Shown in pieces: positions 52,876-57,709 of a stretch of DNA of 64,000 nt; the first letter of the stretch is position 1, and each line of letters starts with the position of its first letter. The DNA is taken from NCBI GenBank assembly GCA_038496445.1, contig JALMLS010000124.1, forward strand, positions 1-64,000, in the 5' to 3' direction. A model generated the notes under the pieces. The model was not told the DNA's origin and searched no databases. It saw nothing but the letters and a program-made list of their open reading frames with translations. The DNA comes from Trichosphaerium sp. ATCC 40318. Taxonomy: Eukaryota > Protista > Tubulinea. The position numbers and the translations under genes were made by a program.

Positions 52876-53382
52876 GCTTTATTTTGTGTACACACTTTTG
52901 AGCTTCAAGTCCTTACCATGTATGTTTATTCAACATATAAAGACTCAATAAAAGGCAAGAATATGCTTTTGCATTCTAAATTTGATGTTTTTTTGCTGGC
53001 AGTGTCACAAGCTCTTTGCTTTAGAAAATGGTGTGAAAGAACAGTCCTAATTTTAGTCTTCCATTGTAAGTCGACTTCAGTTTTTCAGCTTGAGTTGTTT
53101 CATTACACAAGTCAACTAATTGTAGCAGGGAAAATATTCCGGCACTGCCTTTTTATGAAATACAAGTGACAAATTGTGCTTTTCAAAGTTCAGTTTATAA
53201 TGTCTTCTACTTTTTTGTGCAAACCGAAAGACTGAAGTCATTCTTATTGTACCACTAAACCAATCCATCTCCTATGAGGTAACAATTGCTTAATTCCGTT
53301 GCTTCAAATTCTACTTGAATTCAAGAAAAAAATAAGATTAACAAAATGATTTATTGTTGTTTAGCAATGCTCTAAACTAGCT

Positions 53383-54300
53383 TCACGATCTTATAAATAC
53401 ACGTGACATGTCATGATTTACTAAATATTTCTTCTTGCTTTTGGAAAACAAGCAAGGTACAACCTCAACATTGATATCAACACCAGCTCTCTTGAAACAC
53501 CAAAGCCGCCTGTTATCCAGAGAATACCACTCCGAATGTAGTGAAACAACACGGATAGGCGGGAAATCATCAGGCGTCAAGTAACCAACACTCAACTCGC
53601 CAGCAACATTGAAAATGCTCTCTCCAGTAGCAAAGTGCGATGAGATAGAATCGTGAGTGTAGTTAATGTCATGCGGATTAAATGACAAGATGCGTTTGTT
53701 TTTTTGTTCAGCAATTTGCGAAAGAAATGATGAACAGTAGTCCTCTTCCCCTGTAATGGAACGAACATACCACTCTGAAAAGTTGTTTGACATTGCCATA
53801 TCTACAATATAGTTGTCCTTTACAAAATCTACAAGGTCATAAGGTACGCCTGGACTGCTCCAAACTGAGGAATCGTTAAACTGAACAATGTAATTTTTCT
53901 TTGAAAACGCCATTTGATTAATGCCTCCACGAGATCTTCGCATTCCAGTAAGTCTTCTAGCTAATTGCCTTGGGATGCCTTTCCAAGAAGTTTCTCCTCC
54001 TGTATGCGATACTACATATTGATAACTTGGACCAAAGAAAACATTATCATATTCTTCACCATAAGTTATCAGGTTGTACAGATCGTCATCATCCATTTGG
54101 TACCTCGGACCAACTTTCGTTTTAAACACATACTGACAACCGGCTCCAATAGAAAAGGATAGCATTTTGTCACCATAAGAATCCAACAATTTAGGCAAGA
54201 GTTCTGGGAAGAAGAAGTCTGGAGCGAGTTCATAATAGTACTTGCCAGATGAATCTTGAGCGAGCCTTGTATCTGATGCTAAGCTTACACTTTTAAACAT
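53383..54300 (-). CDS. Hypothetical protein with C-terminal ParB/sulfiredoxin-like domain
   Basis: INYTHDSISSHF..G.SI...FPPIRVV...WYSLDNRRLWCFK. An acceptor site upstream suggests a possible additional 5' exon. Confidence 0.6.
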   Translation of the reverse strand: MFKSVSLASDTRLAQDSSGKYYYELAPDFFFPELLPKLLDSYGDKMLSFSIGAGCQYVFKTKVGPRYQMDDDDLYNLITYGEEYDNVFFGPSYQYVVSHTGGETSWKGIPRQLARRLTGMRRSRGGINQMAFSKKNYIVQFNDSSVWSSPGVPYDLVDFVKDNYIVDMAMSNNFSEWYVRSITGEEDYCSSFLSQIAEQKNKRILSFNPHDINYTHDSISSHFATGESIFNVAGELSVGYLTPDDFPPIRVVSLHSEWYSLDNRRLWCFKRAGVDINVEVVPCLFSKSKKKYLVNHDMSRVFIRS

Positions 54301-55226
54301 TTTATCGATAAAATTCTTCCTATGGAGCTAGTTAATGTTACAGAAAAGATCTGACAAAAGATGACCAAGACAAGGTTGTAAATCAAGTGGTTTTTTTTTT
54401 TGTGAAAAATTCAAAACAAGTCAATGGTGTCCTTCGTTTTGAATCTAAATGATTCAAAAAGAGGTAGGATTAAGTGTACCACTACTGCAGTAGCTGGTAG
54501 TGTATGTTTTTCTTCGTTGCAGTGAGTTTGAAGTGAGGTAAAAATACAAATTACGAACTTGCAAAACCCGTAAATGCACAAAATTTATTGTGGTTTTTCC
54601 GTTTTTTGTTCAGAGAAACCCTCTTCAATGAATTAGTGCCTTAGCACATAGCGTACAATAGTGTCCAACCTTGAAACTACCTTCAAAAGGCGCTAAAAAT
54701 CGCTATGAGTCAAAAATGAGTTTGTTTCACAACATTAACGTTTTTTATGCAACACATCTTTTGTGTTGGGCGTAGAAGCTCCATGCAAATACAATTCAAT
54801 TATTAATAATCAGTTTTAATAGTACGAAAGTCAACACGAAAAGTACAGTATCAACTAACGGGAATAGCATCATCCTCTTTGTACAAAACGTCAAGTCTAC
54901 AAATAACGATTTATGCGACTGCACTAAAAAAACAGCACTATCAGGAGCGTATTCTATGGACACCATTACTAAGCTCCTCTCATAATCTGCAGTTTGTAGG
55001 ATATGATTGCAGGAGTGCGCCTACCTGCGTTATTGGGATCTCACAAGGCTGTTTTTGTTAAAAATCTCAGAAAAAAAAAAAGTCAACTAGAAGAACGCTC
55101 AAAAAATGTTAAAAAAACCTAGTAGTACTGATGCCAAGAACTTTCGAAGCTACAATCGAAATACCACAATATTTATTTCGAAAATATAAAGCAGTTTAAA
55201 GGCAGTGCTGGTTTCATTTATTTCCA

Positions 55227-55350
55227 GATCTAGTAGTAATTTATGACCTGTTAATCTCTGATTTCGTGGGTTCGAATCCCTCCGCTGGTTTGACCAGTGT
55301 GGCTGAGTGGTTAAAGCGACGAATTGCCTTAGGGCACTAGGTCTTTTTTT
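55227..55350 (+). ncRNA. Putative Pol III RNA with a circularly permuted tRNA-like module (YrlA/Y-RNA-like mimic or permuted tRNA)
   Basis: T arm GTGGG-TTCGAAT-CCCTC (55266-55282); acceptor-like hairpin CGCTGGT-TTG-ACCAGTG; TG; D arm GCT-GAGTGGTTAA-AGC (55302-55317); terminal stem GATCTAGT/ACTAGGTC; T7 run. Confidence 0.7.
55344..55350 (+). terminator. Pol III oligo-T terminator
   Basis: TTTTTTT immediately follows the 3' strand of the terminal stem. Confidence 0.55.
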
Positions 55351-55661
55351 GTTTCATTCAAGTCAAATTTTTTTATTCATCGGAGTTGCTGTAGCAGTCG
55401 TTGAAGTATGTACGTTTAGTTTTCCTTGTACACCGGATACCGCACTTCCCGAGTCACTCAAAAATGAAACTTTGCACGTGTAAAATAATTTAAACGAAAA
55501 ACAGTACACCATGAACTCCGCTAAGTTCGGCTTCCTAAGAAAGGCTACGAATTATCTAATTTACAACGCATAAATGAGACCTGAACTACGGAGATTTGTT
55601 TCACATAGTGCTTTCTTCACTTCGGACAGGACTCACGGGGACCAGAAAGAGTATTCTCTAA

Positions 55662-57709
55662 ATGACTGAAAAAGCAGCACCAACAGATATTGAGGTAATC
55701 ATTGCGCTCTTTTTAACTCTCGCACTAACTTTTGTTTCCTAACAGGAGCCTATTGAACAAGGTTTGTTGACGCCTACCATTTGTTTTGATTGGTTCTAAC
55801 TGCTTTACAGGAACCCGACCTTCCCGGAAGGCTAAAAAAACAGAAGTGACGGATGAGTCACTTGATAATAACGACCAAAATGATAATCACGTGCGGTATA
55901 AGACTAACGAGGAGTTAATTATTTCGGACGCCACAATAGAGTATTTGTTCGTTCAGCTCGCTGATAAAAAATACCAAGGTAAGGGGAGCATCGAAGAAGA
56001 CATGAATTTAGTCGAAATTATTTAGTAATTATTAAATGCTTTTTAGACAGCACTTTCTTGAATACGTTTCTACTTTCTGCCGACTATTTTTTGGAACCTT
56101 CAGAGTTGCTTGAAATGTTAGTATGTAGATATAAGGAGGTAGTTCAAAGCGGTAAAAAATTACACACGTGTATACAATTGAGGTAAGTCAAGGCAACTTA
56201 TTTGGCTTTCAGTTTTTGAAATCGATTTTGCGAACTCTAAAAATGGTCTTCTTTTTTAGGCTTATAAACGTGATAAAAAAATGGATACACTTACAATACC
56301 CTCTCCTACGAGGTCGCAAAAGGTTCAATGATGGGCTCAAAGGGTTTTTTAATTATTTACTAAACAACGTACGTCAAAAAAACGGCGACTTTGATTACTT
56401 AACTGAATAAAAAAAGGGAGTCGAAGCAGAAAAACATTGGGCTGAAGCGATCACGTTTTATGTTGTACGTGATAATTTTTGGGATACCATAAAACTAATA
56501 AAATGGCTCTAAAAATAGGGGAACCACGAAAAATCGTATAATGAAGCAAAGAAGAAGAGACTTATAATGCCAAAGCCTACAAGACCAACCACGCAAAATA
56601 TTTTAGAAATTGATCCAAAAAAACTTGCAGCTCACATGACTCTCATTGATTATTCTCTGTTTCAGGTATGACGTCTATGTATCATCATATTAAATCTAAT
56701 TTTTTTTTTTAAGGCTTCTGGACTCAAACCTTATCACCATCGAGGGTGGACACAGAAAGACAAACATAAAGTAAAAGTAAAAAAGTAAGGACGAACATGA
56801 AATTAAATTGTTTTTAACTTTTTCTTTCGTAGGATTCTAGAACGATTTGCTCTTATAAAATATTGGATAATAACAACTATTGTAAACGCTACGGACAATA
56901 GTATAAGAGCGCATATTCTGGCAAAGTTCTTGGCACTTCTCGGTCACCTACTAGATTTTCAAAACTACAACGGTACAAAACAACATTCTCATGTTATTCT
57001 TATCAGCTCACTAGGTTTAATGCAAGTCTATTTGGCATTATCCCAAGTATCTGTACAACGCCTAAAGAGAACATGGAAGGTAAAGAAACTAAAGCTTATT
57101 TATTTTTGCTTACTTCAGCGTTAGCACATGTCAAAAAAGAATTTGGCAAACTACGAAAAAGTTCGAAACTTAATGAGCAAAAAAGACTGCTACAAACTCT
57201 ATCACGAAGCACTTTACAACGCCAATCCACCATGTATTCCGTATCAAAGTATAGTATTATATTAAGCGATTCGTAACTCTAATTGATTATAGGAGTACTG
57301 CTAGCCGACCTAGCAGATATTGAGAAAAAAGAAAACTTTTTCGAAAGAGAAGGTTTGACTTTTGTGAATTGGGACAAGATGACAGGTCTTGCAACAATGT
57401 ACGCTCCCAGAGTTTCCACAACTGTATTGCTGATAATTTATAAATAGCTTTGGCCAAATACTGAAGTGTCAACGTATTACGTATTGCGATATCGAAGAAA
57501 ATATTGATGGTGATATTTTGGATTTCATAGGCAACATTGCCAGTTATGAAGTGATTGAAAGTTCTAAAGAAAACTGGTTGACAATGTCCCAACAATGTGA
57601 GAGCTATGACGTAGAAGGAAACCCAAGTACAAAGAAGGGTAATTCATTGCTTAGAATATCAGAGAGTATCGCCCGTAGTACTTCCATGATAACAAACAAA
57701 TTTCACTAA
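55662..57709 (+). CDS. RasGEF (REM + CDC25 domains)
   Basis: ISDATIEYLF, FLNTFLL, LINVIKKWI, EIDPKKLAAHMTLIDY, QNYN...VQRLKRTW, PPCIPY and VNWDKM. Confidence 0.85.

Follow-up and report, generated by a model that had tools for sequence, protein, structure and literature searches.

A tRNA-like module with its parts in a permuted order lies at 55266-55318 of the plus strand of the window, by which we mean the whole 64,000-nt stretch of Trichosphaerium sp. ATCC 40318 DNA that was analysed. We propose, with some hesitation, that this locus is a candidate gene for a non-decoding, tRNA-shaped small RNA whose architecture resembles that of the YrlA Y RNAs. The non-decoding reading is favoured because the core, the helix formed by the two ends and the short stem that clamps the core are all intact, while the anticodon arm is found only at the level of chance and the identity signals conflict. 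We infer the transcription, fold, partner and function of the RNA from the letters of the DNA, and the locus by itself is a well-formed candidate.

Direct reading of the core shows a T arm, a loop-closed acceptor hairpin, TG, a D arm and G26, in this order, so that the B box stands ahead of the A box, as it does in circularly permuted tRNAs. This agrees with an earlier, sequence-only reading of the same DNA, which had described the T-acceptor-D order with the B box first. The T arm, which bears the B box, occupies 55266..55282 (+) and consists of GTGGG (55266-70), the loop TTCGAAT (55271-77) and CCCTC (55278-82), with a single T.T mismatch in the stem, at 50:64. The acceptor-like hairpin at 55283..55299 (+) adjoins the T stem with a 0-nt gap; its strands CGCTGGT (55283-89) and ACCAGTG (55293-99), joined by TTG (55290-92), form seven of seven pairs, one of them G.T, with A1:U72 as the end pair and a U in the place of the discriminator. 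The remaining part of the core, 55300..55318 (+), comprises TG (55300-01), which corresponds to U8 and G9, the class-II (Ser-type) D arm bearing the A box (GCTG-AGTGGTTA-AAGC, 55302-17) and G26 (55318).

The invariant tRNA positions of the upper half are kept, as seen by direct reading: U8, A14, R15, G18, G19, A21 and G53, and further T54, T55, C56, R57, A58 and C61. In total, the 53-nt core contains one mismatch. The T arm, which we take to be of the Leu type, stands beside the Ser-type D arm. A 50-nt core was found in a single copy in the window and in 0 of 100 shuffles, and GGTTCGAATCC was counted once in the 64 kb, with both strands searched, thus being the sole B-box match of the window.

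The core is set into a gene-like frame, all parts of which lie on the plus strand. Two TATA-like boxes, TATAAA (55186-91) and TTTAAA (55196-201), form a putative upstream promoter at 55186..55201, 41-26 nt ahead of the first paired base; a TATA-like hexamer is present in 12.5% of the 60-nt spans of the window. Downstream, a T7 run (55344..55350) of the kind that terminates Pol III transcripts begins 26 nt past the D arm, and a T7 run starting at most 35 nt downstream is found for just 2.9% of the window positions. Both the boxes and the T7 run were read directly and had already been noticed in the sequence-only reading; we infer that the TATA-like boxes act as the promoter of the locus.

Between the boxes and the core lies the leader, which opens with GATCTAGT (55227..55234), the strand that pairs with 55336-43. 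It is followed by an A/U-rich segment of 28 nt (55235..55262) that is unpaired in the favoured fold and holds GTAAT (55236-40), the candidate 39-43 strand in a tRNA-Leu model discussed below, and the stemless CTGTTAA (55248-54); a weak hairpin, AATC-TCT-GATT, can be drawn at 55253-63. The 5′ strand of the clamp, TTCGT (55263..55267), runs two bases into the 5-bp T stem. On the other side of the core, the trailer (55319..55335) is made up of ACGAA (55319-23), ATTGC (55323-27) and CTTAGG (55328-33, with TAG at 55330-32), may alternatively form a GCC-TTAG-GGC hairpin at 55326-35, and is followed by ACTAGGTC (55336..55343), the strand that pairs with 55227-34. The direct repeat GTTTCATT, which flanks the locus, was considered as a target-site duplication and rejected on the position of the T-run: this run stands at the 3′ end of the plus strand and is thus not a retroposon tail.

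Two helices tie the leader to the trailer. In the terminal helix, GATCTAGT and ACTAGGTC form eight of eight pairs, one of them G.T, with no bulge or other interruption (for comparison with Ro60-binding helices, no protist Ro60-site model exists). In the clamp, ACGAA (55319-23) and TTCGT (55263-67) form five of five pairs and flank the core, with ACGAA occupying tRNA positions 27-31 directly after G26. When compared to position-specific shuffles, the terminal helix gave p = 0.0026 (for the 8 nt that adjoin the T-run to find such a partner in the leader) and the clamp p = 0.016, and the two occurred jointly at a rate of 5e-5 in leader/trailer shuffles; the tests were framed after the sequence had been read, so that these p values are supportive and not decisive. 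Both helices are present in the MFE and in the centroid fold.

Other pairings between the two flanks were also read, namely GTAAT (55236-40) with ATTGC (55323-27) and GACCTG (55245-50) with TAGGTC (55338-43). Thus, the earlier suggestion that the ends can pair was borne out for the terminal helix as well as for its GACCTG/TAGGTC alternative, while its proposed GTAATTT/GAATTGC extension fared less well: the GTAAT/ATTGC pairing exists but is no better than in shuffles. According to nearest-neighbour energies, the fold with the clamp (-28.8 kcal/mol) is favoured by 7.7 kcal/mol over the fold with a trans anticodon stem (-21.1 kcal/mol). The folding energy of the whole unit was unremarkable against shuffles (z -1.25), and the best leader/trailer duplex energy was equalled in 426 of 2000 shuffles. 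The clamp fold has no variable loop and cuts the T stem to 3 bp, and is a poor fit to the L-shape.

The locus lies in a 1.25-kb intergenic region between two divergently transcribed genes. In the spliced cDNA contigs from four runs, both neighbours are covered, the upstream one at 53336-54508 (-) and the downstream one from 55757/55860 (+), with a contig extent of 55757-57249, and no contig lies over 54509-55756; as these are spliced cDNA contigs only, the gap is uninformative on a small non-polyadenylated RNA. At least eight introns of 42-77 nt, with GT..AG borders, interrupt the downstream gene. The upstream gene encodes a 305-aa protein which matched no Pfam family and whose sole record is a transcript contig of the MMETSP type. 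One of the cDNA contigs bears a loose 20-nt non-genomic sequence, which we took for a template-switch oligo.

Several minor features were noticed in the same intergenic region. The sequence AAAAAAACCTAGTAGTA (55111-55127) repeats the leader motif CTAGTAGTA (55230-38) and is also complementary to the trailer together with the T-run, ACTAGGTCTTTTT, a match that is marginal against shuffles (15/500); it may be the sign of a second start site or of a more extended unit. A unit of 55108-55350 with A7CCTAGT/ACTAGG..T7 as its closing pair was tried and not adopted; its z was -0.95, the inverted match being this same marginal one. The hexamer TTCGAA occurs in three copies within 130 nt (55143, 55177 and 55271) versus 28 in the entire 64 kb, and an 8-bp hairpin, TCGAAATA/TATTTCGA, lies at 55156-81. 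A decayed tandem copy upstream of the unit is not supported, despite the TTCGAA clustering: alignments to the unit were not above those of shuffles.

To look for relatives, we scanned metagenome, viral and prokaryote contigs for a T loop followed after 17-30 nt by a Ser-type D arm. This gave 47 metagenome, 7 viral and 3 prokaryote loci, which include permuted tRNAs of the algal type, tandem tRNAs and phage modules, and in none of them was the acceptor of our locus found. At 876-930 of one metagenome contig (L013, GC 0.42) lies a clean, permuted tRNA-Ser(GCU), whose junction is at 37/38 and whose bulge-helix-bulge (BHB) motif is relaxed, and another five loci (L007, L009, L017, L020 and L045) represent one GC-rich family of permuted class-II tRNAs, probably from prasinophytes. 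A T arm, a closed 7-bp acceptor and a Ser-type D arm also form one module in viral and metagenome contigs that are AT-rich, at L049:735-786, L051:1465-1514 (the same contig as L010/L024) and L028 (~379-432, reverse). Each module is closed by a 5-bp stem, has a variable loop of 6 nt and takes up a slot in an ordinary tRNA array; Rfam detects the adjoining tRNAs and no YrlA at E up to 0.01. Possibly, these are tRNA mimics or permuted tRNAs encoded by phages.

In genomic order, the DNA yields no tRNA gene: ARAGORN found 0 in the whole window, Rfam gave no match at its gathering thresholds, and a permissive Rfam search of 801 nt around the locus returned no tRNA (RF00005) match at E up to 10. A tRNA can be called only after re-permutation, and this brings in an alternative explanation that we hold to be rather unlikely, namely that the locus encodes a circularly permuted pre-tRNA-Leu(UAG) broken at 37/38 in the anticodon loop. 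In such a precursor, ATTGC (55323-27) would pair with GTAAT (55236-40), the 8-bp terminal helix and its flanks would be cut off, ligation of CUUAGG to A55235 would create the loop CUUAGGA, and RNase Z and RNase P would take out the UG linker, after which CCA would be added. Indeed, when the 5′ part was joined to the 3′ part and submitted to ARAGORN at default thresholds with introns allowed, a tRNA-Leu(UAG) of 100 nt was called with a score of 104.6 and a 37/38 junction, an anticodon stem ATTGC/GTAAT and a loop CTTAGG^A. The loop has U33 and G37, and its class-II anticodon agrees with the class-II D arm. Moreover, 37/38 is the commonest junction known in permuted tRNA genes, where a TATA box and a T-stretch are typical (PMC3978253).

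The controls, however, speak against this explanation. When only the flanks were shuffled and the core was left as it is, ARAGORN made a full-span call in 855 of 1000 cases and reached a score of at least 104.6 in 278 of 1000, and 18% of the shuffles produced a 5-bp stem in trans that bears a U33/R37 loop. A check of the re-permuted sequence with a tRNA finder had been suggested along with the sequence-only reading; it did return a tRNA, but one whose score is matched by more than a quarter of the shuffled flanks. The Leu model also demands a 25-nt variable region devoid of a real stem and either additional bases (26/27) separating the D stem from the anticodon stem or a weakened D stem. It carries U73, A1:U72 and a Ser-type D arm. 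Leu tRNAs carry A73, so that the identity elements of the locus do not fit the UAG anticodon. In contrast, the permuted tRNA of L013, which served as a positive control, was re-permuted into a clean 84-nt tRNA-Ser(GCU) with a score of 111.5.

The splicing mark of permuted tRNA genes points in the same direction. A hand count of the BHB in the 37/38 register gave 4 of 10 pairs at the locus versus 8 of 10 in L013 (a register-free script had no discriminating power, as shuffles reached 9-10 of 10), and the fold that the precursor requires is the one that is 7.7 kcal/mol worse than the fold with the clamp. A hand search for an anticodon arm within the leader or the trailer alone, with the break placed at 26/27, at 41/42 or in the variable arm, found none: CTGTTAA is stemless and ACGAA/AGGGC is unpaired, though the length of the trailer (17 nt) suits an arm. 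The sequence-only reading had likewise failed to build a proper anticodon arm or a BHB, and the shuffle controls and the BHB count agree with it; it had also remarked that ACGAA pairs only by invading the T stem and that CTGTTAA has no stem, just as we find the clamp to overlap the T stem and CTGTTAA to be left with no partner. A tRNA-Sec was ruled out as well, since both the 9/4 or 8/5 arm geometry and the UCA loop are missing. Taken together, the re-permuted locus does not appear to give a convincing, functional tRNA.

The same mixture of well-kept and unfitting parts may be explained in another way, which we likewise consider improbable, though by no means far-fetched: the locus may be a dead or rearranged copy of a permuted tRNA gene, which inherited the promoter box, the closing stem, the core and the terminator, while its anticodon/variable part was scrambled by insertions or deletions, and which is now silent or yields a useless RNA. 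Large tRNA families usually leave pseudogenes, and a dead copy would account for the mixed tRNA identity signals and for the T.T mismatch in the T stem. In addition, the trailer can be drawn as an anticodon-arm-like hairpin, ATTGCC-TTAG-GGCACT, whose CTTAGG loop is like that of Leu(UAG) but one base short. However, decay should affect all parts of a dead gene, yet the core has only its one mismatch, the terminal helix is paired in eight of eight positions and the clamp in five of five, and the T7 run and the TATA-like boxes are intact.

That the locus is no gene at all, being either the junction of adjacent nuclear, organelle or viral tRNA genes that have lost their outer halves or a product of chance, is very improbable. 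Where similar tRNAs follow one another head to tail, the acceptor strands on either side of the junction are indeed complementary, and the tandem Ser tRNAs of L006, L008, L038 and L055 are examples. Here, however, the spacer is only 3 nt, tRNA remnants are absent upstream and downstream (alignments not above shuffles), no metagenome, viral or prokaryote pattern match shares the acceptor strands (for the viral matches, this bears on the possibility, raised with the sequence-only reading, of a tandem junction of viral origin), both the T loop and the D loop look like those of eukaryotic nuclear tRNAs, and a TATA box, a T7 run and two position-specific helices are improbable together by chance.

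We therefore return to the non-decoding, tRNA-shaped RNA, for which the following course of events may be envisaged. Transcription would start near 55225, at a place set by the upstream TATA-like box, and would end at the T7 run, most likely giving a product of ~117-121 nt which is not a tRNA precursor. Its first 8 and last 8 nt would pair, and the 5-bp UUCGU/ACGAA stem would clamp the core in the place where the anticodon stem would be, while the intact T and D loops might dock to form a tRNA elbow. Since UUG closes off the 7-bp acceptor stem, the RNA would not be chargeable as made. By analogy with bacterial YrlA, it could act via proteins that read the tRNA elbow or a minihelix. The loop might also be opened by RNase P and RNase Z, which would leave a molecule in two pieces.

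As to a broader meaning, tRNA-mimicking Y RNAs with closed acceptor stems have been reported from bacteria (PMC4201824; 10.1101/312249), and in the literature searched we found neither permuted tRNA genes nor YrlA-type RNAs reported for an amoeba. It is possible, although we regard it as doubtful, that the locus exemplifies a group of nuclear genes of the Pol III type whose products, tRNA-shaped RNAs with a loop-closed acceptor, would be either the first eukaryotic mimics of the YrlA type or substrates of a BHB-independent maturation of permuted tRNAs; in our locus, decoding would have been lost, while the elbow, the acceptor helix and the paired ends would have been kept. If such units are expressed, they would represent a new route from scrambled genes to tRNAs or, alternatively, eukaryotic look-alikes of the YrlA kind. 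A locus that has the upper half of a tRNA but lacks a credible anticodon arm could discriminate between the tRNA route and the mimic.

Two known systems invite comparison, and the first is that of the circularly permuted tRNA genes, for which Soma 2007, Maruyama 2010 and Chan 2011 are reportedly the sources. These genes are known from Cyanidioschyzon merolae, prasinophyte green algae, the Bigelowiella nucleomorph and Thermofilum pendens, i.e., from a few algae and one archaeon only, and all bear the BHB mark; their intervening sequence is 1-74 nt long, and they depend on an upstream TATA-like box and also have a downstream T-stretch (reviewed in PMC3978253). Our locus resembles them in that the 3′ part precedes the 5′ part on the same strand, the B box comes first, the acceptor linker is short (2-3 nt, inside the range of the known genes), a TATA-like box and a T-stretch are present, and the leader pairs with the trailer. 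Class-II types are frequent among permuted tRNA genes, and the locus is class-II as well, with 37/38 as its candidate junction. Unlike them, it has no BHB at the junction, its re-permuted form appears non-canonical in the unstructured 25-nt variable region, the 26/27 extras and U73, and its host is an amoeba-like protist instead of an alga or an archaeon.

The second system is that of the YrlA Y RNAs, which are bacterial and phage RNAs (RF02553; Chen 2014, PMC4201824) with three stem-loops laid out in the order T, closed acceptor, D, and which retain a variable loop (10.1101/312249). In the permissive Rfam search of the 801 nt, YrlA (RF02553) was the only structural match, spanning model positions 29-81, which is exactly the T-acceptor-D module, and the T arm was aligned to the T arms of the YrlA and tmRNA models. 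The score was 19.8 bits versus a cut-off of 69, so that the YrlA candidate of the sequence-only reading did not hold as an Rfam member: the locus is no member of the Rfam YrlA family. It also differs from YrlA in lacking the variable loop, in having no recognisable Ro60-binding helix, and in its eukaryotic Pol III-type frame. In architecture, however, the two are alike: both have a T stem-loop, an acceptor stem closed by a 3-nt loop, 2 nt and a D stem-loop, in both the flanking strands form a stem at the position of the anticodon stem, the two ends of the RNA pair with each other, and the anticodon loop is absent. In addition, the acceptor of our locus has 7 bp like that of M. smegmatis YrlA, and could be a substrate for RNase P.
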